Positions 10,799 to 64,000 of a stretch of 64,000 nucleotides of DNA are shown here, one piece after another (the stretch's first letter is position 1; every line of letters starts with the position of its first letter). The notes under the pieces were generated by a model, which saw nothing but the letters and a program-made list of their open reading frames with translations, was not told where the DNA came from and searched no databases. Source of the stretch: Cyanophora paradoxa CCMP329 (lineage: Eukaryota; Plantae; Glaucophyta); contig QPMI01000233.1 of assembly GCA_004431415.1 (NCBI GenBank), forward strand, positions 99,214-163,213. The letters are read 5' to 3'. The position numbers and the translations under genes were made by a program.

Positions 10799-11771
10799 GT
10801 GAGTCTCTCTCGCATTTCCGGCGCTTTCCGCTACATAGGTCTTCTCTTGAAAGCTTCTGCTGATCTCTCTGCACACTGCATGCGCAGCTCGATCTCCTGC
10901 TGGCGTTCCTTGCGGGCGGCATTGCCCTTGCCCTGCGAGCTGGCACCCGCCTGTAGCTCCTCGGGCCCGGTGCCTCCGGATCCGGCTACCAGCTGCAAGC
11001 TACGGATCCGGGCCCGGGATCTGTAGCTACCAGCTGCAGGCTATATATATACGGCACCGAAAAAAAGCGCTGAAGCTTCGGCTCGATTTCGGTACCGACA
11101 ATAAGAAATCCGCAATATCAAATGATAGAAATCAATTGCAAACTTGCGATCAAACGCCGATCGCGAAAAGAAAGGAAAGATACGCTTCAAGGATCAAGTA
11201 CCGTTCAATGATTGCAATTGAACAAGTAAGCGGGGCACAGATCTAGATCTAGATCTAGGTCTAGATCGATATCGAGACCAGAGATTTCAAAACACAGACG
11301 TCAACAAATAAAACCCTTAGCCGACAACAAATCTAAAGAACGCACTTGGATACGCAAGATAATAGAATGACACTGTGACAGAGAACGTCGACAGGAAGTG
11401 ATCATGAGAATAGGGAGTCGAATCGAACTGTCTGATAAAGTGAGACGGCCATCAGGCGGGGACCGGCCCGGCGGCGCGGCGATGGACGGGTTAGCCCGCG
11501 GGGTGGGGGGTGGGGCGGGGCCCTCCTGCTGCTGTACGGCTCCTTAAGCTTCGAACCTCCTCCTCTCCTTCAATTCCCTCTCCGCTCCTTCAGCTTCGAA
11601 CCTTAATATAAGTGGGACGACGGATCGGGAGGCCAGATCCTCCTCTTCTGCGAGAGCCACCGCGCCCAACCGATTCGTCACCGCGGCTGCCCTACAAGCT
11701 CATGCTGAAGCCCGGATCCGGAGGGGTAATTATACATATCCGGCCCGCCCCGAGCCCGCCCCGAGACCGCC

Positions 11772-27200: not shown

Positions 27201-30200
27201 CGTTTGTTGCCGCGGCCGACTTGATGAATGGCCGCCAAGGAGACGCTGCGCGAAGGTGCGACAGAGTCAGCGGATTCTGGCGAGCTCACGACCACCCCTC
27301 GAAAGAAGTCGCTCACCGGGAGGAATCGTGGCGATGTCGGAATACGTGACAGCTGCCGACTGTAGTCCCGTGGACGCCCTCACGAGCGCTGTGCACGTGA
27401 GGCTGTAGTTTCCGCTGTACTTCGGCTCCACCGTCAGCGACACGTTGGCCCCCGCCACCGCCCCATCGCTGGCATTGACGGCGGCAGCCAACGAGTAGAG
27501 CCGTCCGTCGCCGGAGCAGTTCACCTCCGCCCATGCGACGCTCTGGCCTGGCGTAAAGCTCAGGACGGCCGTTGCGCGAGTCGCGTTCTCCACAGACACC
27601 GCAAGCTGTAACGGGCCCCAGGGCGAAGCTGCCGAACACATCGAAGTCAGCGGTCGTGGGCAGCAAGCCGACATGGGTCTCCAGCTGCAAGCTACGGCCC
27701 TGGCGGGGTCTTGCGAACTATTTTGCGTCAAATCGTTTCAATCCTATCCCGTCTAGAGACATCCATGCTCGCCCTTACGAGCAGTTACAACGCTCGTGAT
27801 CAACTGCAACGCACCCGCAGGGACCCACACTGCGCCGGACGGCACAGCCAGCGCCGACGGAAGGCCCGTCGACCCCCTCACCAGCGCCGTGCACGCCAGC
27901 GTGTAGTTCCCGCTGTATTTCGGCGCCACTGTCAGTGCCACGCTCGCCTCCGCCGCCGCCCCGTCGCTCGCGTTGACGGAAGCGAATGCGGCGTACGGGC
28001 CGCCGTGGCCCGAGCAGTTCAGCTCCGCCCTCGCGACGCTCTGGCCCGGCGTGAACCGCAGCACGGCAGTCACGCGGGTCGCGTTCTCCACAGACACAGC
28101 GACGCTCGACGGGGCCGAAGGCGCCGCTGCGCGCGCGCATAGCGCCGTCAGTCGATTCGCAACGTAACGCACACTATGAACGGGGCGGCGGGGCAGCGCA
28201 TGTGAACCTGCAGGCACGTCGACTGCGAACGCCGACGCTTCCGACGCCAGGCCCGTTGACGCTCGCGCGAGGGCTGAGCACGCCAGCCTGTAGCCTCCCG
28301 TGTACGACGGCGCGACGGCGAGCTCCAGCGCCGTCCCGGAAGCACCTGCATCGGAGACCTCGAAGGTCTCTGCGTACGGTCCGCCGAAGCCCTCGCACGC
28401 CAGCTCCAGCGCCGCTACGCTCTGGCCCGCTGTGAAGTTCAGAAGGACCGAAATGCGTGTCGCGTTTGGAAAAGCCGTTGAATATAAGGACGGACTCCAT
28501 GGGCGCGCTGCATTGCAATCCGCATTAATATTGAAGATTTGTCAATGACGACAATGCAAGCATGGCATACCCGCTTGCACGTTCTGGGAGCCAAGAGACA
28601 CTGACGCTACAACCGCCTGATCGGAAGACACCGCGAAGCAGGTGCAGTTGATGCTGTACGGTCCAGCATATCGCGGCGGAAGCGTTACTTGTATGACGGT
28701 TCGTCTCGCGTCCGTTTCGTATGCCGGTTTCTTCTCGGAGAACGGCCGCATGTCGCTGTCTGCAGTGCAATTCACTTCGAGGATGCTTATTCCACGATTC
28801 GCTGAGAATGATGCGACGACGTCCAGGCTCGTTGCAGATACGCTTGAGCTCACTATCGACGCGAGTAGGAGGGAAGGGGACCCGTCGTCCGCGAGCACGA
28901 CGATGTACGGGGTGAGCGAGTGCGTCCCAAGGTCGGCGTTGCCGGCGTCTGCGATGCGGATGACGTAGTCGCCTGGCCACGTCGCGTTCGGCAGGAGGAA
29001 GGTGCGGTTGCCGCCGCCGCTGCCGCCCTCGACGTAGAAGCTGTCGATCTTGTCGCCCGTCCATGACTGAACCAGCACCATTAAAGGAAACCGCAGAAGA
29101 GCGAGTGCCGGGGGCCGAACGCACCAGAACCTTGTCTTTGGCGCTGGGAAGCAGGTACACGTCCGCGTGGAAAGGCCACGCCGCCGACGTCCACGAGACG
29201 GTAACAGAGCCGTTGGCGAAGAGCTCGAGGCCGTCGACCTGCGGGGCGAGCTCGAGCAGGCGCCCTGGAAAGCAATATTGAGCAATGACGAAAAGCAAGA
29301 CTGAGCGATGATCGAACGCACAGGACTCGACAGCGAATGTCGGCGTGTCGAGCGAGCCGCCGTCGGCGTCCGCCATGGAGAAGTGGAAGAAGTACTGGCC
29401 GCCGTTGACCGCCGCGGGGAGCTGGACCGAGAGGGTCCCGCCAGCAGAGTACAGGATGACGCCAGAGAGCAGCTGGTACTGCGAAGAATGCTCAGTGCCA
29501 GCGCAAATTCTACCAGAGCTTGTTCTACAAAGGAGGACTCGACATCAAAGGAGGAAGCTTAAGTTCAGTTCTTCAAATTTATAATTAGAGGAGGAAGCTT
29601 AAGCTGGCACAAGCTTATGTTAATTAGGCAAACCTGCACGGGGGCGAGCTGGGCGCTGGACGAGACAAGGTACAGGACGGCGGGGCCGAACGCCCGGCTG
29701 AGCGCGGAGTGGCTGACGTTGACGGAAGCGCCCCGCAGAACCGACGAGCTCCCGCCCGGAGCAGGCTGGGTCCAGCTCGCGGTCAGCGGCGCCAGCGTGC
29801 CTGCCGTCCGGATCCGTTGGAGTCGACGTCTTATTATCATGAGCAGTGGAAATCAAATCATGGAACGCACCCTGAAACTTGAACGTTCTCGAGGAGCCGT
29901 CGGCACCAATAGAGCCGCACGATACGAATCTACTTGAGCATTAGAGACGATCAAGCACGTGTGTCGACTCGACGATGCGGGGGGTACGCACAGGGTACAT
30001 GTGGATCCGAATCCAGCCCATCCCGTGTTGTAGATTGGAAAAGAGGCGATATACAAAGGCGTAGTAGAAACGAACTCTTCCTTGCCGTCTTCAATGATTT
30101 GAAGCGGTCAGCTTCAATATACACTCATGTACCTGCCTAGGACGCACCTGCAGGATTGAGCAATATCCTCACAGCGGAAGCCGAGACGGTCCGGACGATC

Positions 30201-32120
30201 AGAAATAGCCCGTTGCATAATGCCAGACCCCTCAGGGCTGAACCGTAACCTGCGTTGATGCTTCCTGCCGCTCGCCACGTCTTCGGGCCCCCGCCCGCCA
30301 GGTCGAGCTCCAGAATTTCGGAAGGATAAACTGCTCGAAACCCCGCGTCAGCCTCTCTTGACATACGTAGATCTACGGCCAAAGGAGATGCTTTTGAAAA
30401 CTGAAAATTCGAAAACCAAAACCAATTTCGAAACGAAAACGTTTTTTAAAAGATCATAGACTGTGCAAGAAGCTCGCTCAGCAGAGTCCAACAATATTCA
30501 CCCGTTGAGCCATTTTCTTTTCTCTGCCCCTCTGCAAAATAGTAATCATGAACAAGTGTTAGAAGCTCGATATCGATTCATACGTATACTAAAACGTTTG
30601 CACCGAAGAGATACCACCTACTCCCTGCAAGGAAGGTGAGACACGCAGGCACTTGAATCTAAATAGGATAAGCACCGACAAGCAAAGATTTGTGCACGGC
30701 CCGCCCCCGCCAAGGGGAAGGCCCCACCGGCGTCACGGTGGCCCAAGTCCGGCTGCTCAACGAGTAGCTGCAACGCAGCTGTCAGCAACACGCGCTCGTT
30801 TCGGTGGGGTACAGAGTACATCTCTGTTAAGGTTAATAGAGATTTAATATAGATAGCAGCGTATCTATGTAGCTAACATGTATGTAGTAAGGGGGGGTCT
30901 CTGTTCTTACCGGTAAATGAGGTCGCTGATGTAAACCACGCCGCCACTCCAGAACTGCCCGCCTGCCACCTAGAAAGGGCAAGCTAGACTGTAAGAGGAC
31001 AGTTTCGCACAAACTAGACTATGATTGAGGGGACTAGCCCGCCCGCAATCTTGAAAAGCCGGCGGGCGAAAGGTTTTGGCTGTTTCGTAGCTCAAACTAA
31101 ATTTAAAGCTTATGCCGCCGAGCTTCAGTTACGAACCCAGATGCTTCCGTTGAAGAAGGTCATGGCTGGAGGGCTTTCAGCAGGCACGGTGGCCGCAGAG
31201 ACACGCGGTCAGATAGCAGCTCTTACCGTGGTACTCCAATCCATTAGGAGCAGGGAACGGCTGCGTGTAGCTCGTGAAATTCGTGTCGAAGCTCCAGATA
31301 CTCCCTGCGGCCGTGCAGTATATGGTCTGCTCCAAGTCCCAAACGCAAGAGACTTGGTTGTACTTAGGAGATCCCACAGGGGCTTGAGTCCACTGAGCTG
31401 TCTCTGCTCTCGGCGTGCCTCAGCTCGAGCTCGATCGAGAGATGTAATTAGTCATGAGGTTTGGAAAGAAGCTCGCACCTACGTCCATTATCCACACTTC
31501 GTAGTAATAGTTCGGATACCCATTGGACCCGCCGACGACGGCGATTTTCGGCCGCTGGTCGGGGGCGCGATACGAGACGACGCCGTGATTGTAGCGCCCC
31601 GCGAAGGGGCCCGCCGTGGTCTCCGCGAAGGACACCCCGTAGCCTGCGCCGGACAGGGCGCGAGGTCAGCGGCGCGTCAGTCGAACGCGCACGGAGCACA
31701 GAGCTGGGAGATGGCCTCAGGTAGCGCACCTTGGCCGAGGGCGCCCGGGAGGAGCCCGCACAGGAGCAGCAGCGCGAGCAGCGCCCGCCGCGCGGGGCCC
31801 GCGAGCGGGGCCGGGTCTCGGCGGCCCAGGCCGAGGCCGAGGCTGGCCCTGGGGCCATGGCCGAGGACAGGGCCCGCGAGGGACGCAGTCGCCGCGTGGG
31901 TTCGAGGCCGCGGCCGGCCGGAGGCGGCTGCGGTAGCTGGCGTCTCCGACCATATGCATGGGCCTCGGTAGCTGGTAGCTGGCGTTTCCGACCCTCGGCC
32001 TCGGCCGGTCCCCCACTGGGCGGGCCCGGGCGCTCCACAAAAAGCACCGGCCGCGGGCGGCAGAGCTAGAGGCCCAGGCCTAGCTGTCGGCCTTTCTTGC
32101 TCTAACGCGTGTAGCTGCAT
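12297..32120 (-). CDS. Giant single-pass receptor-like Ser/Thr kinase: SP - kelch propeller - 2 Kre9/Knh1-like beta domains - ~28 Ig-like repeats - kelch propeller - Ser/Pro stalk - SEA-like - TM - kinase
   Basis: Signal peptide ALLALLLLCGLLPGALGQ (~31730-31790). TM VAALLAAVLLFVYV-RRKRR (~15060-15150). Spliced kinase exons at ~12700-14600 give GEGAFGRVY, RAVKE, CRHPNVL, GLAYLHH..VAHRDLKPQNILL, VCDFGISR, RGTLLYMPPE, DVWAFGIVLTEMLTG, CLEKKPHKRPSF. Stop at 12297-12299. Start codon uncertain (nearest in-frame ATG at 32120). Confidence 0.85.
18170..28510 (-). repeat. Intragenic tandem array, ~1,266-1,272-bp unit made of three ~100-codon exons (B-A-C) plus their introns
   Basis: Marker CGAACTATTTTGCGTCAAATC at ~20101, 21373, 22639, 23909, 25175, 26447 and 27714; near-identical ORFs recur in the ORF track. 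Confidence 0.97.
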
Positions 32121-45369: not shown

Positions 45370-45768
45370 GGTTCTCGCGGCCAGGCGCATGCACAGAGCT
45401 TGCGAATCGCTTAAACAGAATCTCGAATGCATATAGCATCGATGTGCGGGGCTGCGGAGGCGAGGGCGCGCGGAAAGATGTGCAGGCGTGGCCAGGATCG
45501 AATTTTTGCGTCGGCTGGGTTGCCGCGCCCTGTCGCGTCCGCAGAGCTTGCGAAAGGCTTTTAAAAGAGCTTAGATGAATATTGTAGCGATGCGCATGCG
45601 TGAGGATGCGAGGGCGCGCGGAAAGATGTTCAGGCCCTGAGGTCCGTCAAGGATCGAATTTTCGGGGTCGGCTGGGTCCTCGCGGCCCGGCGCATACGCA
45701 AAGCATGCGGAAGGCTTTGCGTACATCCCAAATGCTTATACTATTGTTCCGTGCATGCGCCGCGGCGT
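45370..45768. repeat. ~148-bp diverged tandem repeat, left part (interrupted by the LINE)
   Basis: GGGCGCGCGGAAAG at 45464 and 45612; continues at 57356, 57504 and 57653. Confidence 0.85.
45749..45768. repeat. Left target-site duplication of the LINE
   Basis: CCGTGCATGCGCCGCGGCGT identical to 57336-57355. Confidence 0.92.
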
Positions 45769-46500
45769 TTTTTTTTTTTTTGCAAAAATGGACGTCGCAT
45801 TGATACACCACGGCACATGTATCAATGTTCTACGTGACGTGCCCTTCCGACCGGTCATCTATCTAGCCGAAGATGCTAGCTAGGTGCCGGCCATGGGTCG
45901 CTCAATATGGGAGGTTCGCCTGAGTGGGGGAGCCATGGTTTTCGGTGATAGCCGTAACCAGACCCGCGCGCCCACCCCTTGATCAACTCCTCCATCCCTC
46001 ATGAGCCCTGGAAGTGAAATGTCTCGCAGTCCGCCGCCCGCCCTTGCCGCCGCTCCGTCACCCCGCCTCCTCCTCACTCCGCCACCTCCCTCCTCCTCAC
46101 CTGCGCCCCAGGACCCCGATTAATCGGTGTCCCGTTGTGTCGAGGTGAAGAAGGTGGTAGGAGGAGGATATGAGGAAGGAGAGGGAGTGGGCGGAGGCAG
46201 CGGTAGGGGGTGGGCAGCGGATGCGGGGCAGGGCGGGGAGAGGTGCCGGGACGGCAGAGTGGAGAGAGCGTGGGCATTGACAGGTGGCGCAGAGAGCTGG
46301 GAGTGCGGAGGCGAGGCGGGCCGCGAGGGGTCGGGAGGGGTCGGCCGGAGTAGGGGGTGTGGCCGAAGCCAGGGGGGTGTCCGAGGCCGATAGGGTGGCC
46401 GCGCTGGAGGCGCCGGCGTTGGTGGGGCCAGCACTAGCGTGGGCGCCAGTGCTAGCTGAGTAACTAGCTATAGTGCGGCTATTCAAGCACTCGCGGATTA

Positions 46501-49500
46501 GGGTGGCGACTCCGCAAGGCTGCCCCAAACCTGGATGCCATAGCTACGAAATTCGAGGACATTGAAAACGGCGCCTGGTTGGGCAGATTTTGGAAACGCC
46601 AGTACCGACCCCTTTCCCACTTCACCCCCGCCGTCTGGGACGGGCTAATGGCCATGCCAGAGGACCCCGAACTCGATCGCCTCATCTCGTCCCTGTCCAA
46701 TGGCGCTGGCGGTCCCTCCGGCCTCACGAACGGAATGCTTAAAATGCTCTGGTCCCCCCTCCGCCTCTCCAAGACGGAACGCCAGGCCTTAGCCGCCTCA
46801 CACTCTACAGACGAGATAAACAGCTTCGAGTCCGCCGGGCACTGGACCACCTCGCGCGACGCCATCCGAGCCCTAGTTCAATCCACTCTTCTCGGCCACG
46901 TGCCCGACCACGCACTTCGCGGTCAAGTCTACGCTATCCCGAAACGAGATAATTCAGCAGATCTCGCCGATCTCCGCCCCATCACCCTTCAAGAAGTCAC
47001 CTGGAAGCTGGTCACGGGCCTCCTGACCCACCGCATGGAAGACCGCATTGATACACATAACATTCTACGCGGCCGCAATTATGGTTTCTGTCGCCGCGAA
47101 TCTACCGACCCTGTCCTCTACGCCCTCCGATCCTCCCTCGAGGACGCGCACCAGTTCAAAAAGCCAATCTTTGGCGGCCTGGGGGATATTGCCAGCGCCT
47201 ACGACAGTGTCTCCTGGCATAGCCAAGAGCTCAGCCTTAATCGTATCCAACTCCACCTCCATCCTGAAGGGAAACGATATATAGCCCTCCACAAAAAAGC
47301 AGCTCAACACCGCACGGCGTGCATCCTTACCCCCCACGGCCGCACTGAATATTTTCAAGTCCCCTGTGGCCTCCCCCAAGGAGGCATCGAAGCCCCTCTC
47401 CACTGGCGCATTTTCTTCGACGCCGCTCTCACCGCCATTGAAGAACGAGCGACTCAGTCCAATTTCGGCTACCAGCTCGGGCCGCACCGATCTGATCCGA
47501 CCCGCCCCCGTTCCCCCCGCCCACCATGCCCTGGCGAACCCCTCTACTTCCCCGCCGGTCCCTGCCCCAAAGTCTCTGTGCTCGCATACGCCGATGACAC
47601 CACCATGCTTGCCAGCTCGGCTCAGGGTCTCCAACATATGCTTGACTGGCTGTCCGAATTTCTCCATATCCATGGCATGAACTTGAACGCCAAAAAAACG
47701 GAAATTTTCCACTGGAAACCCCCCCGATCCGAAGAGCCGGTCAAGAGCACATACTATGTTGGAGTTGGCGATTCCAGAGCTGAGGTTGGCCACATCCTCT
47801 CCCCCACAACGCCCTTCCGCGTCCTTGGCGTCCAGTTTACTGCGAACCTGTCCTGGACTCACCAAGTCCGCCTACTCAAATCCCAGCTCCAATCTGCAAT
47901 CTCGATCCTCGCCACAAAAAAGATTACCACTCACGAGTTCCAAGTGATCTTACACCGGGTTCTTTTCCCTAAATTGTCATACCCCCTCCGCATCATGACC
48001 TTAACGCCATCCCAATGCCAGTCCATAGACGCCGTCTGGCTCACCGCGGCCAAACACACTGCCAACCTGGCCCAGTCCGTCTCCACGGCTGCATTCTCTT
48101 CCATCTATCGCCTTCCCTCAATAGCAGTCATCCAACGCCAACAGCAGTGCGTCGACGAGCGCCTCCGCCAGGAACTAGCCTCCCACACATCATCACTCTA
48201 CGGCCAAATATACCGACAACGTGTCCTCGACACCCAGGCCCGATACGGGCTTCCCCTTCTCCCACACGAATATCCGAACCTCCCCTCGGGGCCCCTCACA
48301 CTACAGAAAAATATTACGCTTGCCATCACGGCAGACCTGACCTCCACCTCCCATCACATCCTCACAACGTGCAACTCCTGGACACATGGCCTCCCCTCCC
48401 GCCGGTCCCATCTTCGACGAGAATATATTATATTTTATATCAACGCAATTGTCGCCCCTCACCCTCCAACAAGCCGGTCAGCGACTCTATCGCTGCGGCC
48501 TCCTCACAATCCGTGACATTACGGCCCCTGACGGCTCCCTTGCTGACTGGTCCCTCCTCTGGAGTCACGGCCGTGTCCCGGCATACTACAAACGTGCCCC
48601 CTCCTGGTGGGACGCTGTCCGCGAAGAACTCTCTCTCTCCCACCCTTCCATTCGGTCCCCTTTCCTCCCCCGCTACCCTATGCCCCCGCCGCCCTCTATC
48701 CCAGACATTCGTCGCTCTCTCCAAGCCAATGCCGTCCTTGCGGGACTCAACATTGGTGACTTTGTCTGGACATCCCAAGGCCTTGTCGGCCGCGTCGTTG
48801 GGAAACCCCCTATCCCGGACGAAAACCCGGACGAACTGGCTTCGGAGGACTCCGACGCGGATCCTAACTGCCCCCGAGATTCAGAGTATAACTATGGGGT
48901 GGAACTAGTCCATTACTGCCTCACCCCGTACGATGGATTTTCCACGCGCGACCCCGGTCTATCGGCTCTTGAACTCGACCCCGCCTGGCGTGAACGCAAA
49001 CTGGAATTCCAATTCTGTCCTCACCCAAAGTATTGCGGCTCTGAACAGCTTCATCGCGAGCTGGGCCTCTCCACGACTGCTTGCAGATGGGTCGAGTACG
49101 CATCTCACGTTCGGCGAATCCCGGGGGGCTCCTCGTGCGAATCGAAGGGCTGGTCTCCGAGCCTCTCCCACCTAAATAGGCCGGCTCCCACCCGCTCCCG
49201 GCAACTGCCCGACTCCGCCTCCGCTTTCACATGTTCCCACTCCAGAGGGCAGCAGACCACACGTGCTCAGCCCACACGAGCAGCTAAAAAGGCCCGCCTT
49301 GATCCCTCCTCCGACGCCTCCGCGGCCCAATATGACCTCGAAATTCCCCCTCCCAACCTCCCCCGTGAAATCACACATATTGGTTTCATCGATCTCTGGC
49401 TCCGGGAAACTGCCTGGTGGGACTCTTTCCGCGCGGAGGCCCAGGCCACCAATGTTGCCCTTGAGCGACGCCCACGCCCGATGACCCCTGCCTCACAAGC

Positions 49501-52500
49501 CGACCATGAATTCTATGAATCCTCGGCCGGGCTCGATTTCGTCTTCGCCACCTCTCGAGCTCTCTTTGCCGAGCTCTGCCCGACGCTCTGTGCCCTAAAC
49601 TCCCCGCCCCCTCCCCTCGGCCCTACTCCCCGGGTAATATACACGGACGCCAGCACACAAAAACAGGGCTCTGCCTCTGTCCGAACCACCTACGCCGGCC
49701 TTGCACCTCTCGAAAATAATCCCGACCTACCTGACAAAATCGAGTTCGCCCGCCGCCTCCCTGGCGTCCAGCACAACGTGAACCTGGGAGAGCTAGCAGG
49801 CGCGATCTCCGCAGCATTCACGTACTTCGGGCCCACGGGCGGGAAAATTATCACGGACAGCCAGAACACTATCCGAGCCCTGACAGCCTTCGCCTTTCGA
49901 GACCCTTCATCTTTCTCCCATCCCATCAATTTCCGCACCCTGCTCCGCCGAGAAGACGGGGCCCTTCTCCTCAACGCTCGAACGCAATACGCCATCCGTA
50001 TCGCCCAAGACCCGAATTTCCAAGTCACGCTACAGTGGGTCCCCTCTCACCAACCAAAGACCATTCCGCGGCCAACTCCAACGGCTCAGACCCCAACGGC
50101 GACCCGCCGCCTGGCCCCCTCCTCCCCCCGCCGACCCCGTGTCCCCCTCAGCGGACCAGCTGCCCCCCTACCTACCGCCCCGCAGACATTCCCTGCCTCG
50201 GCTCCCTACCACTATATTGGTGGAATGGACATCCCGGATGCCCGACTGCTTTTTTCGGACGACTCCTCCCTGCCCCTCCCCCCGTCACTATTCTCGTCCC
50301 TCTTCCCGCCTCGCCGGCACACCCGCACATATATTCTAGCTGACAGCCCCGCCGACTACAATTTCCTCCGATGCCAAGCGGACCTCGTTGACTATGTTGA
50401 TGCCTCCGAGACTACCAACACCCACCTGGTCCTTGACCTCGTCCCCCTCGCGTCCGCCCGACTTGAACGCGCCTTCACGGCGGCGGAAACCGTCATCTGG
50501 AACCGCTGCATCCGACTTCCCAAAGATCATACTCTTTTTCTCTCCGACGAACACCTGACCATTGTCTCGGACTGCGACATCCTCCGCGCCTACTCCGCTT
50601 TCCTTGAAGCCTTAGGACGCAGAGACATCACCCACAACATCTCCTTCCAGTGCTGCTCCCCTCCCAACCCAATCTTCCTCCAACCACTCCCCGAGGACGC
50701 CCCTGACGCTGACTACCCTGATCCCGGGCCTACAAGGAAACTCGCCCTCGACTACTACTTGGCCCATCCTAGGGCTTCCGGTTCCACCTGGCATTTCCAC
50801 CAAACTTCCCTCTGCAAACCCGCTGTCCCCGCCGACCGTGACACGCCTCTTCCCGCCTGGTACTGGGACGAGGATCTCACACTCGCCCCCACCCCCCAGA
50901 CTGAGGCTGGCACCCCTCTAATCGCGTACCACCGTTGCGACCCTGGCATGTGGGGCATCCCTATTTCCTCCCTGATCGCAGAACAATGGGCACGGGGACC
51001 CGCCCTGTCCTGCCCGCACTGCCACCCCACCCCCGCTCCGCCTGGCCCCCCACCCACGTTCCCTCTCCGCGACCAAACCGGCGCCCTTCCTGTTTTATTC
51101 GAACGCTATGGACGCCGAGCCATCCCCTACTCAGCTGCCATCGATCCTGACGGCCCCCGGTATGATCGCCGAGTACATCCCCTCCTTGCCGGCATAACAT
51201 CTCGCCTGGCTGCCCTTAAAGCGGCCCCCCTCTCCCTCATCGACCCCAACCCTCGATCTGGGGCCCACCTGGCCACACCCATTCTCCTCGCACAACCCAT
51301 ACCTGCAGAACCCGTCGACGCTTTCTTCAGGCTCCTTCAAAACCGACAAGTCTCCTTCCGCCTGCATGCCCCAACCACCCCCAAGTGCCTCTTTCTCTCG
51401 TCCTCCCAAGCAACCTCGATCCTAATGGGCACAGCCCCCACTGCCCTCTCGCTCAAAGCCCGTGCAGGCCAGCCGCAAATGGACCGACCCTACGTCCCGC
51501 ACCCTTTCTCCCCAACAGAATACGATTATATTCTCCTTCCCCTACCCCCCTCTGGGTCCCGACCCTGGCGACTAGCAATTATCTCGGCCCGCCTCCGCGA
51601 AATCCGCATCCTGGACGTCACCCGCAAACCCACCTCCGACGTCACGGTCCCTCTTAAAGACTGGGTTATCAACTGGTGGACGGCGACTCTCCGCCCCGGC
51701 GACCCCTCCCCACGCTCGGCCTGGAAGTACGACACCAGCACCTTTCCCACACAAGCCTGGAAAAACGTTCACACGGGTGAAGACGCTCTCTTCGTCATGA
51801 CCGCCGCTGAGTTCATTGGCCGTGGTGAGGAAGTCCACCTGTATGGCAAAGGACGGGGCCGCCCCATCCCCTTCCACGCCCCCATTTACCGGGAGCGTTG
51901 GGCGGCCGCTCTCCTTCTCCGGGACCCTGAGGTCCTCCTGGGGACAGTCCAGGCCAACGACCCAGCATTCACAATAAAACGGCAGCGCACGACCCCGCGC
52001 ACCAGCTCCCGCACTTCCCAGCACACGGCAGCCAAAGCCCGCCGTCTAGTCAGACGCAAACGCGACTCCACCCCTCCCCCCTTCCGTCCTCACCCTTCCC
52101 CCCCGCCCCTTACACCGGCACCCCCCCGGTCTCCCACTTCCCCTCCCTCCTCCCCGCAGCCCCCCACCCCCCCCACCCTGCTCTTCCCCACCCCCACGCC
52201 CCCCGGCACCCGAGGTCCGACCAACTGCTTCCCCAGGCCGAACCCCCGCTCACCCGACTGAATTTCCCCTCCCCCGCCCTCTGACGCTGGCGGAGAAAAG
52301 CTGGCTGGGGAATGCCTTCCGGTTTGCAGACAATGATTACTGCGCGGAGCAAACTCTCATGTCGAAACCCCCCCTCCCACCCGCCCCCCGACCCGACCCT
52401 CATCGTCACTCACTTATTCGACGAGGCGACCTTATCCACCTCCGGCCGAATGCCGCCCTCAGCCTCCCCCTCGTGGAAGCCTTTCTTGACCTGCTCTCTT

Positions 52501-55028
52501 CCCGGGAAGCCGCCCTGGCCTCGCCCCACCCTGCCTACTTCCTGTCGTCCAGCTCCTACCCCGCTAGCGCAACCTCCCAATTCGACTCTCGGGGCTCTGC
52601 CCTCCTCCCCCTACACCGATACCTTCCCCACGGACGACTCCTCGATGCCCGCCTTGTTCTTGTCCCCATCCTTACCTATCGCCCAACTCAACAGAACCCA
52701 CCAGCCCCCTCGCCGACCCCTCCTTCCGGCATATCACGGCACCCTCAAGGCCCCCCGGGACACTGGCATCTACTTGTTCTATTCCCTCAGTCGCGCTCTT
52801 TCTACTTCCACAATGGCTCCCTCGACGTCCCTGATCACCTCGTCTCCTTTGCGCAAGACTTGGCGGCCACTTGGAGTCAGCGCGACTCTGGATCTCTTCT
52901 TCCCCCCACTCAGTTCTGCAGATGGACCCACCTACGCCCGGAAACATCCCTCTCCGTTCTCCAGCCCCCAAACAGCACGGCCTGCGGCCCACTCCTTCTC
53001 CTCACAGCTGACCTACTCAGTCGCTCCTCGGCACTTGCCCCGTCGGACTTGCCCCGCCCCCCAGCCTACATTCAGGTCGACAATGCAGCGCTCCGCAGAT
53101 ACCGTGAATATATTGCCCTCAGCCTCTGCTACGGGTCCGTCACCCTTGACCCTATATGCTGCGGTCCTGCCCTCCCAGCCCTCAGGCCCCCACCAACCTT
53201 CCCTGGGCGTACCCAACCGCCACGCCGCCCCCCAGTCTCCACCGGCGGCACTCTGCCCCCCCTCGACTCCCCCCCACCCTCTCCCATCCACCCAGCCCTC
53301 CCGCACTCCCCAACTGTGCTTGCGTCCCCCCCGCCTCACCCTGAAGGGCCCGCCACCCCCCTCCCTCCCGGTGCCCGCTACGCCCAAGAACTCGCCTCTC
53401 AGCTCGCTGACCTGGCCCGCAACGAAGCTTCCGCAACAGCGCGCTGTCTCTTCCGGCCGTCCCACGTGACCCCACTCGAGGCGACTACCATCCTAGCTGA
53501 AGCCGCTCATCGCGACGCCGCCCAGCCGCCACCACGGTCCGCCAAAACATCTAAAACAGCCGCAAAGAAAGAGGCAGCTCGGACCCCGGCCACGAACCGT
53601 ATCCCGAACCCAGCCTATACTCCTGACAACTGCCACAATGATGCCGCTGACAAACTTGCCAAAACGGCCCCCGACGCCCCCCTCTCAGCCCTTCTCTTCA
53701 TTCCCCACAGCTTCAAATGCTTCCTCATCCGCGTCGGCCTTCCGCCCCCACTATCCCACGGCCCAGTCCCCGGAGCCGAGCCCTACCGAGGCAGCCTCCA
53801 CGCGTACCGTGTCGAGGGGGACCCCCGCTCCCACTTCCTAGCCGAAGCCTCCCTCTCCCAATACCTCGACTGGCGCCAACTTCGTAATGCAGGGGCCGTC
53901 CTCAGCAATCCTCACGTTACCCTCGCCCCAGCCCTCTCCCTCGTGTCAGACAAGCCCCCGGACCGCCGTACCCCCACCGGCGATCACCTCCGCAAAGTCA
54001 GATTCCAGTGTATTCTTGGAGGCCTTCCCTCCCTCACCGTCCGCCTCCTCCATGACCTCGACCTATACGGCCCTCTCTTTCCGGACGGTATTGCTCACTG
54101 CCCCTTCTGCCACCTCCCTCCTACCCCTGCCCCTTCCCCTGAGGACGCTGCTTCCCCACCCCCACCCTCCCCACCCCCTGCCACGTGCACCCCCCCGGAC
54201 TCCCCCTCGAGCTCGCCCTTTTCAACCCACCCCCCCGAAGACTTCATTCACATATTTACTTGCCCCGCCGCTCGCCTCCTCCTCCAAGCTTTCCAGGACG
54301 CACTCGTGACCTTCCTCCGCGCCCGGGTTCTCCGCCACTCGCCCACACCCTTAGGACACGACGATACTATTTTTCAACTCTTTCCCTTCCTCCGCCTCGT
54401 CTCCCCTGACCCCGCCTCTCCCCTCCACTCCGCCCTCCTCTCCCCCACCGCAAATCCGGCCCTCTTCCGCCCCCCAGGTCTCACCGATACCCTATGGAAA
54501 AAGCTTAGCCCGGCCCTGGCTGACATGCTCCCCTTCCCCGCCCCTGCCCTCCTGCGCCTAGGTACCCCGGCAGGATTGCCCGCCCTCTGCACAGCCCTGG
54601 GCATCAACAAGACCACCACAATGTCAATCCAAAAAGATCTAGCGCTACTCCTCGACCAACACCTCCGTGCGATCTGGAGGGACCGCTGCGCCCGCAACCA
54701 CGCCTGGGAGCTCCGCCACGGCATCACTGACAGAACCAAACGTCGATACCGCAAACATGCAGACACCAAACCCTCCCGCTCGCCGCCAGTACAGCCGCCT
54801 GGTCCCCCCCTCCCCCCCGCCCCCCCCGCCCCTCCCTCCATGATACCATCTCCATCACTGACTTCTGCTGCGGATTGGACTCGGAAGGTCAACCATGGGT
54901 TCTCCTGGAAAATTTCCGCCAAGCAATCGCACGACTCCCTGCCGCCCCCTCACCCCAGGGCGCCCCCCCCCCCAGGCCCCCCCCTCCCTCCAGCCGCCCG
55001 ATGCCGGACCCGTCGCCATGACATCTGA
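46501..55028 (+). CDS. LINE polyprotein, central/C-terminal part: RT - Cys-rich linker - RNase H (split) - unknown domain - 2x Ulp1/C48-like - zf-RVT-like; two frameshifts (~48400, ~52200-52270)
   Basis: GAGGPSGLT, LRPITL, NYGF, DIASAYDSV, GLPQGG, LAYADD, LNAKKT, FRVLGV (RT); IYTDAS, LGELAG, ITDSQ, QWVPSH...NDAADKLAK (RNase H); GHWHLL...NSTACG (Ulp1); LPSL...CPFC...EDFIHIFTC, IWRDRC...WE...GIT. Frame is open from 46501 with no start codon. Confidence 0.9.
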
Positions 55029-57335
55029 CTTCTCTTGCACCTGCGGCATTCGACTTGCCTCCGCAGCTGCCCTCCAGGCCCACTCCGACGCCAGACGGGG
55101 AAAGTGCGCCGCTCGCCCTGAGCCCATTTCATGCTCTGCCTCCCAACCTGCTGCACCCCCAACGCAACCATCACACAAGAACCCCGACACCGGTACCCTG
55201 CCCGCTTCGCCTGCAGGCCCTACGTCCACTACTCAACCTTCCAAGCGCCCCGCTCCGGTGCCCCCCCTGGCCCCTCCCCCGAAACGCACACGCCCGTCGC
55301 CTGCCTCGCGCACACGCCCGTCGCCTGCCTCGGTCTCCGCAAATTGGACCCCAATCCGCGAGTGCTTGAATAGCCGCACTATAGCTAGTTGCTCAGCTAG
55401 CACTGGCGCCCACGCTAGTGCTGGCCCCACCAACGCCGGCGCCTCCAGCTCGGACGCTGCGCTGCATGACGCCGAGAGTTGTCGTACGAACCACGCGTAC
55501 GGATCCGGACGCGTACTAGCCATGCGTACGGCCGCGTATACGTACCTCGCAGTTAGCCCCCGCGCTAGCGCCCACGTGCACGCCAGCGCTGGCCCCGCCG
55601 ACGCCGGCGTCACGGACGCTGCGCCGCATGACGCCGGTCTCGTACTCCTGGGCCGGCCTGCACGCCGCGCCCCACAAGTCCAACAGTCCTTCAGCCGCCC
55701 GGCCCCTCTCCCCGCGCGCCTCCTCCTCTGTGTTCTCCTTGCCGCCCTTGTCCCCGCCGCTCTTGCGGACATCGAGCCCAGCACAGCAACGGCCGCTGCA
55801 GTCGCTACCGCCGCCGCTGCCCTCTCCTCTCCGACACTAGTCACGGCGGCCTCGTCCCTTCTAATGTTATACCCTCCCTCTCTTTACACCGCTGACCGTA
55901 TTGACGCTCGCCGCCATCGTGATGTGCTCCAGATCCCTGTCCTAGCACACCCCCCGGACGCGGCTAATGCGAAGCTGAACCTCCGCGCCCTCATGTGGAA
56001 TATTCGCCGCTTGGAGGGGAAGGCGAGCGGCAACAATATTGCAACTAAATTTATCAGCGCAATCGACTATGGCCGCCGTGACTGGGACTGTCACTTCGTT
56101 GCTCTTCAAGAGGTCGACATGGTCCCCGTCGACCGCCCCCCCTCGAAGCCCTTTCCGCCCAATATCCGCGATCACCTGATTAAGACAGCAGTCCGCCGCC
56201 ATAAATCTAGCTACCTTGTCTACTCCCCTCCATCCGCGGCCCGCCCTGGCACCGCCGGCTCCGCGCTGTGGATCTCAGCAAGCTATGCAGCGCACCGCCA
56301 GGCGGATTATGCGTTTGATGGCCGAGTAGCCGGCACTCGGTTTGACTTCCCGTGCACGCGCGAGCGCCTCATTGTCCTTTCCCTCTATGTGCCGGACTGT
56401 GGGCACGACAATTTGCAAAAAGAGCTCCACGACCTCACCGAATACCTGATCGCGAAGGTCGCACCCGACATCCACGAACCTGACTGGCAGACACATCTCC
56501 TGGTACTTGGCGATATGAATAGCACCTACTCTCCGTGCAACGACCGGATCACCGGGGGCAACCCGCGCACTGAAACTACCCCCCCGAACTCCTACGCGGA
56601 AATCTGGACCCTCCTTCGAGCGACCTGGGGCCTCAGCGACACCGGTACCCCCGGCGATTTCACGCACATCTCACACCGCGCGGACTTCATCGATGAGCGA
56701 GGCCACCGCCCTCTCCTGGATGCCGCCCGCCTCGACTATGCCCTTGCCTCCCCCACCCTAGCGGCCCGATCGCTAGGCACTCGTACACTGGCTGTCCCTG
56801 GACGACCTTCTCCCCTGCTCTCAGCTGACCACTTCCCAGTACTTGCTACTTTCACAACCGAAGGAGTGCTCTCCGCCCCCCCGACCGAACCCCGCCAGCC
56901 CCGACCCCAGCCTCTCCCTCCTCTCTTCAACTATGCCGCCCAGCCTGCACCCATCCGGCTTGCTTTCAAGCTCGCTGTCGAAGCTTTTCTCAATAAACAC
57001 GGCCAGCGGTATATCCAGCTCCTTCTCGCTCCCGAGAGCAGCCCCGAATACGCCCACTGCGCCACGAAATCCCACCGCTCCCTCCTCTGCGCAATCGCCC
57101 AAAGTATCAAATCCGTCGCTCACGCTCAAGAATTCTCTACCGCAAAAGTCCTCCAACACCGAGTAGCTGCCCAGGGAGATATGGCTAAATTCAACCACCT
57201 ATCTGCACTGGACGCTGACGACGAACAACTCGTTGGCCGCGTTGGACAGGCCCTAAACGACTGGGCGCACCAAGGCTCCACAGACCACCCGCCTGACGAA
57301 AATCTGCGGGCTCGGACACCACACTGGCATTCTGC
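55018..57335 (+). CDS. LINE polyprotein, N-terminal part: zinc-finger-like motif, hydrophobic segment, AP-like endonuclease (APE), linker cut by the TSD
   Basis: gccATG at 55018; CTCG...AH..C; WNIRRL, ALQEVD, LSLYVP, LGDMNS, FTH, RLDYAL, SADHFPV; ORF runs into the flanking satellite. Confidence 0.9.
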
Positions 57336-57710
57336 CCGTGCATGCGCCGCGGCGTGGGCGCGCGGAAAGCTGTCCGGGCCTGTCCAGGATCGAATTTTCA
57401 GGGTCGGCTGGATTCTCGCGCCTTGTCGGTCGTCGGAGCTCGCGAAAAGCTTTAATAAAATCTCAAATGAATAATGTAGCGATGCGCATGCGCGAGAATG
57501 CGAGGGCGCGCGGAAAGATGTTCAGGTCCGTCCAGGATCGAATTTTCGGGGTCGGCTGGGTCCTCGCGGCCCGGCGCATCTGTAAAGCGTGCGGAATGCT
57601 TCCTCTACATCTTAAATGCTTATGCTATTGTTCCGCGCATGCGCCGCGGCGCGGGCGCGCGGAAAGATGCTCGGGCCTGTTCAGGATCGAATTTTTGCCG
57701 TCGGGTACCT
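57336..57710. repeat. Right TSD (57336-57355) and right part of the ~148-bp tandem repeat
   Basis: Unit markers at 57356, 57504 and 57653. Confidence 0.87.
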
Positions 57711-59620: not shown

Positions 59621-60457
59621 ACAGCACGATACTGTACTAGCTATAGTCCGCTGCATATATATATTCATAGCCTGGCGGTCAGTGGCGGCCGCGGCCGGGC
59701 CTGCAAACGCACACGCATATTACGCAACCGTATATACATTACGTACGAGCGCCAGCGCACGTATACGTATATATGTCTTTGCGGCGGCCGCGCCGGGCGA
59801 TCGCTGATCGATATCGACGCCGTGCACGTGACGGTCGTCAGTGACTCGTCACATTTGGGTCCGGACCGTCGGACTCCGGACTAGTACTCCGGAGTCCGCC
59901 GGACCACGGCGCCGGCGCCGGCGTGCATTTGAGAGGCTAGGACGCGATAAGATACATACATAGCAATTGTGCCACGGAACCACGGTGAGCTGGCGCCTTG
60001 GAGGAGTCCGAAGCCGCTTTTGCGACCGCATTCGAGCTCCGGGAGTTCCATGCATACGCATACGCGTGTGCATATGTATGCATCAGCTACGTATCCGTAC
60101 ACCTGTCGCGATCGCAGCTGGCCCTCGACGAGCGGGAGAGGCCACGTCGTAGGCCTAGGCCTAGGGCCGGAGACACTAGCTGCGTTGACGTCCGTCCGGC
60201 CTATGTATATGCGAAACGCAGGCCTAGGCCACGACCATCGCTGCGACCCGCCCCCGTCCGGAGGCGGAGGCCCATATGCATGGTCGTGGACGCGAGCTAT
60301 AGCTACCGCCCCTGGCCGGCCGCGGCCATGCAGCCTCGCGGCGACTGCGCGAGCGTCCGTCCCGGGCCCTGTCCGGATCCTCGGCCATTCGGCCGGCCTC
60401 GGCCTCGGCCGCCGATCGCGAGACGCGACTCCTCCAGGGCGCTGGCGGGCGCTGCGC

Positions 60458-63400
60458 ATGAACGCGACTGCGCTGCTGCTCCTGTACATGTGCGGGCTCC
60501 TCCCCTGCGCCCTCGGCCAAGGTGCGCTATATAGCTACCTCCCAAGCTGAAGGCATGCTCTGCGCTTCGAGCCTTCCTTCCGCTCGCGATCGACTTCGTG
60601 TGGCGTTCTTTGGACGGATGCCTGCCAGGCTGATCTGTTCCTATGCCTGATGCGCCCGGCGCCGCGCGCCGCTGATCCGCCGCTGACCTCGCGCCCTGTC
60701 CGGCGCAGGCTACGGGGTATCCTTCGCGGAGCTGGCACCGGCACCGTATGCGGGGCGCTACAATCACGGCGCCGTCTCGTACCGCGCCCCCGACCAGCGG
60801 CTGAAGATCGCCGTCATGGGCGGCTACACGGGGCAATATCCAGGCGATTTGTACGACACGTGGATCATGGACGTTGGTTCGAGCTCCTTTCCGAATCAAT
60901 TGCAGTGCTGCAGTGCAGTTGCTGAATGAGCGTTCAATTCCCGCGAGCAGAAACGACACAATGGACGCCAGGGTCAGCGGGAAGCCCTGTCGCCTCGCAC
61001 ATTTCGTGCGAGTGGGACTTTGCGGAAACCATACACTGCATGGGGCGGGCTGCGCAAGCCGGTTTGTATTTGACCGCTCTAAATTTTGAATAATATTCCC
61101 GCTCCGAGGGTTCATTCGTATATGTATCGATGTGCTGCATACGCAGGGAATCCGTGGTATGTTTGGAGCTACGATACGAACTTCACGAGCTACACGGCTC
61201 CGATCGCTGCACCCAGTGGCGTCCTCTACCCGGGTAAAGCTCTCCGCATCTTGTATATCTTCCATCTGGCGCGGAACCGATCGCGAATGACCGAATGGTG
61301 CAGTCATGACCTTTTACAACGGAAGCATCTGGGTGCATGCGTCTTTGATTCCTCTAGAACTATCTCATTGCAGCTATCTATAACGACATCATCTGAAACT
61401 TGTTCGGCCTGGTTTTAGGTGGCGGGTGGGTTCTTTATGATCGGTAGCGTGCGATACAGCAGCGACCTCCTTTACCGGTGAGGGCGCGCGGCACAAATAA
61501 GCTCGCGTGCTCTGCCACTCAACTTCGACCGACCGCGCGACCCTGCAGATACTCGGTCACCGCCCGGACCTGGACCAGCGAGACGCCCGCGGGACCGTCC
61601 CCCTGGCGCGGGCGCTCCAGCGGCCAAGCCACGCTCGCAGGTGCTGCAATGTTTCGTTTTTATTGTTTTCTCTTTTTCAATTCGTTTCCGCCTGCTGAAA
61701 CAATTGCGCGTGCGTTCTCTTCCTGAGTGCAGGGAGTAGATGGTATTTTGTCGGTGCGCACTGCGCGGCAATTCGTCTTCCGCAACATTTCAGACACTGG
61801 CTCACTCTCGCTCTTCGAAGGGGGAGGTACATACGACAATGGCACTTACGGTGAGAATAATATTCAAAGAAGAGAACTAGCTTGCAGAAGGCCATCGCCT
61901 CTCTAATCTGAGACGTGCTTTTTCCTTGCGCAGTGTATCCCCCCGAGGTCCTGGAGCTCGACCTGGCGGGCGGAGGCCCGAAGGCGTGGCGAGTGGCGGG
62001 GTACAATTACAAAAACGACAGGGCGGGCTCGGACGTAAAGGGCATCGCGCCGTGCAACGGGCTCCTCATTTTTATCCGCGGCGACCCGTCTCCGGTCCTG
62101 TTCAACCCTGCGGGTGCGCCGATCCAGGCCCAGCGCCGGATCTCCCATCGATAATATAACTAGTACACTTAAAGCTTGCCGGGAATTAAAATGCTCGCCA
62201 ACTAACTCTTTATGTACTTATTTTGCAGACGGCAAGCATGAGTACACCTTGTGGCCGGGGGGCAGCGGTTGGGTGCAGAAGTATTCAGGGCAATACGCTG
62301 TTCCTGGGAACGCGTTTCCGCTCTCGATGCCGGCGTGGGCGGGGTTCGGGTCCACCTGCACGCTGTGCGCGCCGGCGCCCCCCAAAGCCGTGTGCCCTCA
62401 CCGGAATCGGCGCTCACGCGGCCGCCCCGCGAAAACAGGCTCGTTTCGGGCGGGTCCGACTGGACTACAAGCGCGCCCTCGTCGAGGACCTACCGCTTCA
62501 TAGGTGCACGGGCGCCCTGACAATGTCCCGTGAACCGTCGAATCTATCAAGCTTTGACACAACGAAACAGGGACGCTGGCGCCGCTGACCGCCAGCTGGA
62601 CCCAGCCTGCTCCGGGCGGGAGCTTGTCGGTCCCGCGGGGCGCTTCCGTCAACGTCAGCCACTCCGCGCTCAGCCGGGCGTTTGGCCCCGCTGTCCTGTA
62701 CCTCGTCTCGTCTGGCGCCCAGATGGCCCCTGTGCAGGTTTGTTCGAATTTAAAACCAGCTTCCTCCTGCTTGTGGCTGTTGTGGAATCTCAATCATGCC
62801 CGTGATCTCCATTCTTCGCAGTACCGGCTGCTCTCTGGCGTCATCCTCAGCTCTGCGGGGGGCAACCTCTCGGTCCAGCTCCCCGCGGCGGTCAACGGCG
62901 GCCAGTACTTCTTCCGCTTCTCCATGGTGGACGTCGACGGCGGCGCGCTCGACACGCCGACGTTCGCTGTCGAGTCGTGTGCGCCACTCGAGCCTCCGAC
63001 TCTGTATTCTTTGTCTGACACAAATTGCTTTCCAGGGCGCCTGCTCGACCTGGCCCCGCAGGTCGACGGCCTCGAGCTCTTCGCCAACGGCTCGGTCGCC
63101 GTCGCGTGGACGTCGGCGGCCTGGCCTTTCCACGCGGACGTCTACCTGCTGCCGAGCATCGGAAACCATGTCCTGGTGCGCGCTATCCGCCGCATCGTGT
63201 TTGTGACTTTTGAAAGGGAATGAGGTGATCGATATACTGTTTATGCTCTTTTCGTAGTCGTGGACGGGCGTCAAGATCGATAGCTTCTACATCGAGGGCG
63301 GCGGCGGCGCCGGCGGCGGCAATCGGACCTTCCTCCTGCCGAAACCCTACGTGGCCAGGCGGCTACGTCATCCGCATCGCAGACGCCGGCAACGCCGACC

Positions 63401-64000
63401 TGGGGACGCACTCACTCACGCAGTACATCGTCGTGCTCGCGGACCCGGGGACCGTTTCTCCGTCCCTCCTCGTCGCGTCGACAGTGAGCTCAAGCCTGAC
63501 CGCGACCAGCCTGAACGTCGCCGCCTCCTTCATGACGAACCGGGGAATAAGCATCCTCGAAGTCAACTGCACGGCTGATAGTGGCGTGCGAGCGGCAACG
63601 GGGAGGCGAGCAGTGAGCGATGCGGACGCAGGAGGAACGATGGTACCAATCACAATCATTCCACGCTACGCGGGGTCATTCAGCATTGACTGCACGTGCT
63701 CCGCGCTCTCATCGGATTCACTGCTCCTGTCATCCGTGCCTCTGGGCACTCAGATCGTCTTAGCTGGTGCGGCTTGACTTGTGACCCTTACAGCTATATA
63801 TTCTTCTCCACTCGGCCATTTATTCAGCTTTCTCGCGCAGCGCGCCCTGGGAGCCCCTCCATCGCGTCGGCCGCGGCGACGAACGCAACACGCGTCGCGA
63901 TTCTCCTCAAGTTCACCGCCGGTCAGAGCGTGGTGGCGTTGGAGCTGGCGTGCGCGGGCTTCGGCGGCCCGTACGCAAAGAGCGTCGCGGTCACCGACGC
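60458..64000 (+). CDS. 5' part of a paralog of the giant kelch/Ig-like-repeat receptor kinase (runs off the window; apparent +1 frameshift at ~63342)
   Basis: Same exon series as 28200-31800(-): CGLLPCALGQ|GYGVSFAE...AGRYNHG.VSYRAPDQR, ELDLAGGGPK.WR, GTLAPLTASWTQPAPGG, LELFANGSV, NATRV...FTAGQSV. Start codon uncertain; kinase not within the window. Confidence 0.85.

Follow-up and report, generated by a model that had tools for sequence, protein, structure and literature searches.

How did a LINE come to lie in the genome of the glaucophyte Cyanophora paradoxa with its reverse transcriptase ahead of its APE endonuclease on one strand and its poly(A) tail on the other? The question is posed by 64,000 nucleotides of contig QPMI01000233.1 from strain CCMP329 (the window), in which an insert of 11,567 bp (~11.6 kb), bounded by an exact 20-bp TSD, sits inside a satellite. 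A first-pass annotation, made from the letters of the window, had read it as about one complete LINE copy, circularly permuted and inverted. The copy is dead, scrambled and without evident function. We consider it probable that it stems from one retrotransposition of a giant APE-RT-RNase H LINE, in which twin priming was combined with template switching on one RNA. The structure is what we observe, the order of events is what we infer from it.

The insert and its target site

The insert and its surroundings consist of the following parts (window positions; strand where one applies).

45370-45768: satellite target, left part, ~149-bp unit (297-bp two-unit)
45749-45768: left TSD copy, 20 bp, identical to 57336-57355
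45769-45782, minus: poly(A) tail, 14 nt (poly(T) on the plus strand)
45783-46402, minus: segment C, 620 nt, putative first cDNA, with ORF tail (last codon at 46100) and 3' UTR
46403-46499, minus: piece r, 97 nt, a copy of A 55353-55449 with 1 difference
46500-55316, plus: segment B, 8,817 nt, in opposite orientation to C, from the end of the linker to the C-terminal tail
55285-55334, plus: true B/A junction, a perfect 24-nt tandem repeat (55285-55308 / 55309-55332), then 2 nt
55335-57312, plus: segment A, 1,978 nt, in opposite orientation to C, with APE, the region before it and the linker start
57313-57337, plus: piece a', 25 nt, the last 2 common to the TSD; putative start of the second cDNA
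57336-57355: right TSD copy, identical to 45749-45768
57356-57704: satellite, right part

A single TSD pair encloses the whole insert, exact over 20 bp as first reported. 20-mers common to both satellite flanks are frequent, so the identity of the two copies is by itself weak proof. When the insert and one TSD copy are deleted in silico, the empty site rebuilds the ~149/297-bp satellite with anchor spacings of 148, 157, 148 and 149; the 8 extra nt sit, by eye, within a unit and away from the junction. Further, the two copies have two variants in common which are absent in the intact neighbouring unit at 57633. Because the array is restored and the variants are shared, the 20-bp repeat is a real TSD.

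The native order of the element

Metagenome contig L001 encodes an intact relative of 3,720 aa, P0012, against which the segments can be ordered. The protein pieces were searched one by one, and no read-through or joined sequence was used. The match of C is from tblastn.

55957-57315, plus: P0012 aa 2-453 (APE)
46504-48432, plus: P0012 aa 594-1238
48431-52018, plus: P0012 aa 1236-2409
52428-54779, plus: P0012 aa 2541-3317
46378-46118, minus: P0012 aa 3628-3716 (C), 44%

Altogether A spans aa 2-478, B aa 594-3317 and onward, and C aa 3628-3716. Judged by this alignment, the native order is A-B-C, as the first-pass annotation had supposed, and the window copy is rearranged; an order with RT before APE as the native one is ruled out. 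The three segments tile the ORF in native order without overlap. Lost are ~345 nt of linker between A and B (P0012 aa 478-593) and, from P0012 and the contig overhang, about 370-490 nt of tail between B and C. By an estimate from L001, ~94% of the span from APE to poly(A) is present. The copy can hence not be called complete: besides the linker and tail stretches, the 5' region and 52 nt at 57312/57313 are missing.

Written in the orientation of the element, the insert is TSD-inv(A)-inv(B)-r-C-poly(A)-TSD. The pieces keep their native order, two of them are inverted where they stand, and the 5' end is missing. A circular permutation is formally true for B followed by A on the plus strand, yet two in-place inversions in native order describe the sequence more simply.

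RT and APE searches matched gene models of Cyanophora paradoxa, one of them 92% identical to the window APE; outside Cyanophora and P0012 the matches were at most 26% identical. P0012 was the sole match in a full-length homologue search, and a scan of JGI metagenomes returned one distant match (21%).

Coding content

The recognizable domains, all on the plus strand, are as follows.

46936-47835: reverse transcriptase (PF00078, E 5e-20)
49634-50053: RNase H, N-terminal part to the WVPSH motif (PF00075, E 7e-4, below cutoff)
52428-53150: Ulp1/C48-like protease domain within the RNase H loop, from the alignment to P0012
53634-53663: last acidic motif of RNase H, ~1,200 codons after the His motif
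54099-54263: CCHC zinc knuckle
55030-55083: C2H2-like finger, native to the B tail (weak Pfam match; contig continuous over 54223-55316)
55996-56793: APE endonuclease (PF03372, at cutoff)

Segment B begins just before the RT and runs through RNase H to the knuckle, in agreement with the earlier description and with P0012. Its full content is the end of the linker, RT, a split RNase H, the Ulp1-like domain, the CCHC knuckle and a C-terminal tail with the C2H2 finger; frameshifts occur at about 48433, 52166 and 54950-55000. The APE follows B on the plus strand, again as first described. RNase H of P0012 is split likewise (aa 1753 and 2929), and since the motifs are kept in both the window copy and P0012 an RNase H activity is plausible. 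The protease domain keeps its HW and Q..C motifs; PF02902 on P0012 stays below cutoff (E 0.0034) and a PDB search with this domain gave no match. A homologue search with the zinc-finger region, in a restricted length window, found nothing. The features of APE-type LINEs are present, viz. the order APE-linker-RT, a CCHC knuckle, poly(A) and a short TSD. No restriction-like endonuclease motif was seen by eye after the CCHC knuckle in the window or in P0012, nor was there a Pfam match.

The joints

Over 51800-57700 (5,901 letters) we aligned contigs from four runs, three presumed to be of DNA and one of RNA, and the native sequence was taken from contigs about 5-8% diverged from the window copy. 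The B/A junction had initially been placed at 55018, with an ATG and a zinc finger as the start of A. This placement has to be abandoned. Contigs from all three DNA runs cross 55018, as do DNA contigs with the family allele at 54989, and one family contig, of 4,301 nt, is continuous through this point to 55316; it aligns over 52168-54146 and 54223-55316 and goes on for 1,108 nt which are unlike the window. By this continuity the ATG and finger belong to the native C-terminal part of B and are out of frame with it only through an indel in a poly-C run. The true junction lies at 55316-55335, and its 24-nt tandem repeat consists of 16 nt re-copied over a native 8-nt repeat.

At the start of A, a family contig joins the window sequence at 55335 and is preceded there by at least 255 (probably about 400) letters of different sequence. 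From this, A begins mid-element, which contradicts the suggestion that copying had reached the 5' end of the RNA. Structure at the start of A was not significant (z = -1.4). At the other end of A, 36 additional letters follow 57312 in the family contigs before these meet the window sequence again in a 16-nt imperfect repeat; the window copy has thus lost 52 nt. Translated by eye, the letters after 57312 match P0012 aa 453-486 gap-free, and the count of 52 nt agrees with P0012 aa 453-478. The native sequence continues past 57337 in family contigs (runs X2, X3 and X15), and the last 2 nt of the A side are common to the TSD, a 2-nt microhomology. None of the short-read contigs listed from the four runs crosses the window copy's own junctions within 51800-57700, probably because the sublineage is low in copy number.

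Segment C was correctly recognized at the outset as a minus-strand ORF tail with 3' UTR and poly(A): it matches the C-terminal residues of P0012, and the poly(T) stands next to the TSD. The 3' UTR forms a long stem-loop (fold z = -4.4); an Rfam search gave chance matches only. C does not start next to the end of B, however, as had been assumed, for the 97-nt piece r, overlooked on the first pass, intervenes. Piece r is not inverted; it comes from far away in the element and lies at the inversion junction, and imperfect matches of 4/5 and 3/4 nt extend beyond its ends. It differs from A at 1 of 97 nt and, like A, carries C at 55446, where most family contigs have G; both points indicate that r and A derive from one donor.

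Two other origins of r were considered. The first, that the element natively carries r at its two ends, finds no support: L001 has no such repeat in the part covered, which includes only 296 nt upstream of APE, and the family contig running 1,108 nt past 55316 holds no piece matching 55348-55453, although the window's own sublineage may differ. The second, a plain twin-priming overlap with B continuing to 55453, is rejected, since contigs leave at 55316 and others cross 55388-55505 as A.

Age of the copy

Divergence of the window copy from the common family sequence is about 5-8%. Among the 39 best-supported differences 25 fall on third codon positions and 24 are synonymous, and premature stops are absent apart from the three frameshifts. 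The mostly synonymous differences mark it as a young copy of a separate low-copy sublineage. The best runs contain only 22-26% of the words of the window stretch, a low share which such a sublineage would explain.

A probable single insertion with two primers

Staggered cuts 20 bp apart in one satellite unit, as the TSD records, would have opened the target. One target end would have been primed on the poly(A) and have copied only C, the 620 nt that are seen. The other would have annealed by the 2 nt of microhomology in the APE-RT linker. This second cDNA may have slipped past 52 nt after its first 25 nt and then copied A for 2 kb toward the 5' end. It would have left the RNA mid-element at 55335 and re-engaged uncopied RNA ~0.4-0.5 kb upstream of the stop of the first cDNA. 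There, after a stutter at 24 nt, it would have gone on along B for 8.8 kb and stopped with ~345 nt left to its own priming site. A slip after 24-25 nt follows each of the two starts of this cDNA. Piece r would have been added before the two cDNA ends joined, either by the first cDNA switching to the RNA (3' switching) or by the second cDNA snapping back on itself; with an imperfect match of 3-4 nt at each end of r the sequence fits both routes and does not decide between them.

The case for a single event comes from the inversion, which begins exactly at the TSD edge with microhomology, and from the family contigs, which natively continue past 57312, 57337 and 55316 and upstream of 55335. That A, B and C do not overlap and stand in ORF order, with gaps of ~345 and 370-490 nt, argues for one template. 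Two proposals of the first-pass annotation are upheld. A second primer starting in the APE-RT linker is supported by native sequence beyond 57337 and by the microhomology to the TSD, and a jump of the second cDNA to uncopied RNA near the 3' end by the position of B between A and C in P0012. Its landing on an end made by RNase H just upstream of the first cDNA finds no support: an end of that kind would be expected right beside C, barring some trimming of the first cDNA, and ~370-490 nt separate the end of B from the start of C. Several points tell against the scheme as a whole: no contig listed crosses the copy's own junctions, the internally primed arm is far longer than in human tumours, r was copied a second time, and the contigs that supply the native sequence are diverged from this copy.

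Unlikely, yet deserving mention, is a coupled swap in which two RTs at the two target ends traded places on one looped RNA. The first cDNA would have exchanged the 3' tail for the 5' region, where it landed at 55449, and the second would have gone the opposite way, from 55335 in the same 5' region to the 3' tail. The points at which the cDNAs leave the 5' region, 55353 and 55335, are 18 nt apart. If true, twin priming would involve two linked RT sites able to swap template, and this would hold in a non-L1, RNase H-bearing LINE far from mammals.

Other explanations

The B-to-A junction might have pre-existed in the template, as a tandem-duplicated donor or as a circle or concatemer transcript, with ordinary twin priming to follow. 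We regard this as improbable, even though a continuous cDNA from 57337 to 46500 would then require no jump, and B/A and r/C are roughly reciprocal joins of 5' region and 3' tail, as the excision of a circle would give. Among the contigs listed from the four runs no joint or contig spans 55316-55335, where contigs can show presence only; contigs of the presumed RNA run depart from the window sequence at 55316 and join it at 55335. A tandem donor would further demand that copying stopped by chance just 345 nt before one full period, for which we infer odds of a few percent. The head-to-tail dimer transcript that had been offered as an alternative fails, because the ends that meet, of B at 55316 and of A at 55335, are both internal to the element, and no tail, poly(A) or 5' UTR stands at the junction. 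Back-splicing is rejected for want of GT/AG: the native letters after 55316 begin with GA (after 55308, with CG) and those before 55335 end with GC, in a sublineage ~7% diverged.

An assembly artefact, in which long reads of different copies were merged or inverted, is quite improbable in our judgement. The flanks are a high-copy satellite, the rearrangement is known here from the assembly, and the low share of words in the best runs could be taken in its favor; the latter equally fits a low-copy sublineage. Against it stand the exact TSD, whose copies have private variants and whose empty site can be rebuilt, the tiling of one ORF without overlap, and the microhomology, 52-nt slip, 24-nt stutter and 97-nt templated piece located precisely at the joints. 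Two RNAs of the same donor, one giving A and the other B (or r), would account for the second copying of r, an awkward step on an RNA template should the element's RNase H act promptly, and two-transcript insertions are known for L1. Random overlap of A, B and C would then be expected, and there is none apart from r; this origin is very unlikely. We give hardly any credence to a normal 5'-truncated copy later scrambled by two DNA-level inversions through repair or replication template switching. These would indeed yield two in-place inversions in native order, and templated insertions are typical of end-joining, but one breakpoint coincides exactly with the TSD edge while both TSD copies are intact, the breakpoints lack inverted repeats, and the flanks are not rearranged.

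Comparison with known systems

Dualen is characterized by an ORF of great length in which RNase H and a cysteine protease are encoded. The Cyanophora element, too, is an algal LINE with APE and with an ORF of this kind. It differs from Dualen/RandI in that no restriction-like endonuclease motif was seen by eye after its CCHC knuckle, in its C48-like protease inside RNase H, and in a TSD of 20 bp and not of hundreds of bp. Dualen/RandI LINEs of Chlamydomonas are algal LINEs with APE (PMC9977147).

Canonical twin priming (Ostertag and Kazazian 2001, summarized in PMC2912911) comprises internal priming by microhomology, a head-to-head cDNA join and a discrete TSD. All three are found here. In contrast, the inverted arm of the Cyanophora copy is non-colinear and its second primer site lies >9 kb from the end of the first cDNA. 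By the text and legends of the human reports, the pattern matches twin priming with 5' switching, a copying error that is known but rare, to which a piece from 3' switching or snap-back has been added. What the first-pass annotation took to be a step not normally ascribed to LINEs is in fact published for human L1 under that name (10.1101/2024.08.27.596794, 20 cases; PMC11702581, Fig. 3A), and twin priming with switching has, by these accounts, been inferred from a few dozen human L1 insertions. A limited literature search covering few subscription papers found no report of it outside mammals. New here are the length of the switched segment (8.8 kb), the presence of both extra pieces in a single insert, and the glaucophyte host. 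The case suggests that switching is a general side reaction of APE-type LINEs and that an internally primed cDNA may extend for 8.8 kb after a jump. For annotation the lesson is that such copies can mimic an RT-before-APE order or a false 5' end.

The closest parallels are human. In tumours 20 of about 3,600 solo L1s were assigned to twin priming and 5' switching, and 3, in which a distant piece is not inverted, to twin priming and 3' switching; the internally primed arm was short (median 0.54 kb, below the poly(A) arm) (Zumalave et al., 10.1101/2024.08.27.596794). The 5'-switching L1s share with our copy the TSD, a 5' inversion, an extra internal inversion at the breakpoint, a forward 3' part with poly(A) and an internally primed cDNA that moves to not-yet-copied RNA. 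They differ in host, in the LINE, which here has its own RNase H, and in the 8.8 kb of the switched segment; the Cyanophora inverted arm measures 10.8 kb against 0.6 kb forward, ~17 times longer, and the copy is fixed in a genome assembly, not somatic, with a second extra piece present. That piece, r, resembles the short non-inverted distant piece at the inversion junction in 3' switching and in the cDNA snap-back documented for R2 (R2 PRINT, PMC11371274); in Cyanophora it occurs together with the 5' switch. Finally, a three-part GREM1 retrocopy made by L1 was explained by a template switch of the second RT (Mendez-Dorantes et al. 2024, PMC11702581, Fig. 3A). It likewise has three adjacent non-overlapping pieces, of which the 5' and middle ones are parallel and inverted against the 3' piece; it differs in its origin from the 3' UTR of a host mRNA, in engineered human cells, with no piece like r.

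Surroundings of the insertion

The ~149/297-bp satellite on either side of the LINE copy (45370-45768 and 57356-57704) has a very high contig depth and is, therefore, abundant elsewhere. Distant from the insertion, large paralogous regions in inverted orientation are positioned on either side of it (28300-32000 and 60200-64000).

Irregularities within the copy

Segment B, which lies on the plus strand, carries three frameshifts.

Frameshifts in segment B
48433-48439, plus strand: frameshift 1, a 7-nt AT-rich near-duplication
52166, plus strand: frameshift 2, two C fewer than in some contigs
about 54950-55000, plus strand: frameshift 3, an indel within a poly-C run

The second and third may be assembly errors. 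The two slips of the second cDNA, i.e., the 24-nt stutter at the B/A junction (55285-55332) and the 52-nt skip at 57312/57313 (57297-57337), are each located 24-25 nt past its start or restart. With n = 2, this spacing may be the mark of an unstable initiation phase.

Comparison with an intact relative

Upstream of the APE domain a diverged, ~165-nt internal repeat is present (55396-55474 vs 55564-55636, about 80%). On visual comparison, a short motif around 55645-55665 is similar to positions 180-200 of L001, the metagenome contig which encodes the intact 3,720-aa relative P0012; in L001 this motif is directly downstream of the end of an upstream ORF. At the other end of the element, the pyrimidine-rich ORF tail base-pairs with the purine-rich 3' UTR and forms a very long stem-loop (45960-46330, minus strand; folding z = -4.4). 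Because L001 carries corresponding inverted repeats at 10736-11551, the stem-loop may be conserved. In this LINE family, the C-terminal tail has a C2H2-like finger downstream of the CCHC knuckle (55030-55083); none was seen in P0012.

The RNase H domain is split: its His motif and its last Asp motif are about 1,200 codons apart (50036-53663), and a C48-like protease sits within the split. P0012, a 40% identical relative, possesses a matching split RNase H with an internal C48-like protease (aa 1753-2929).
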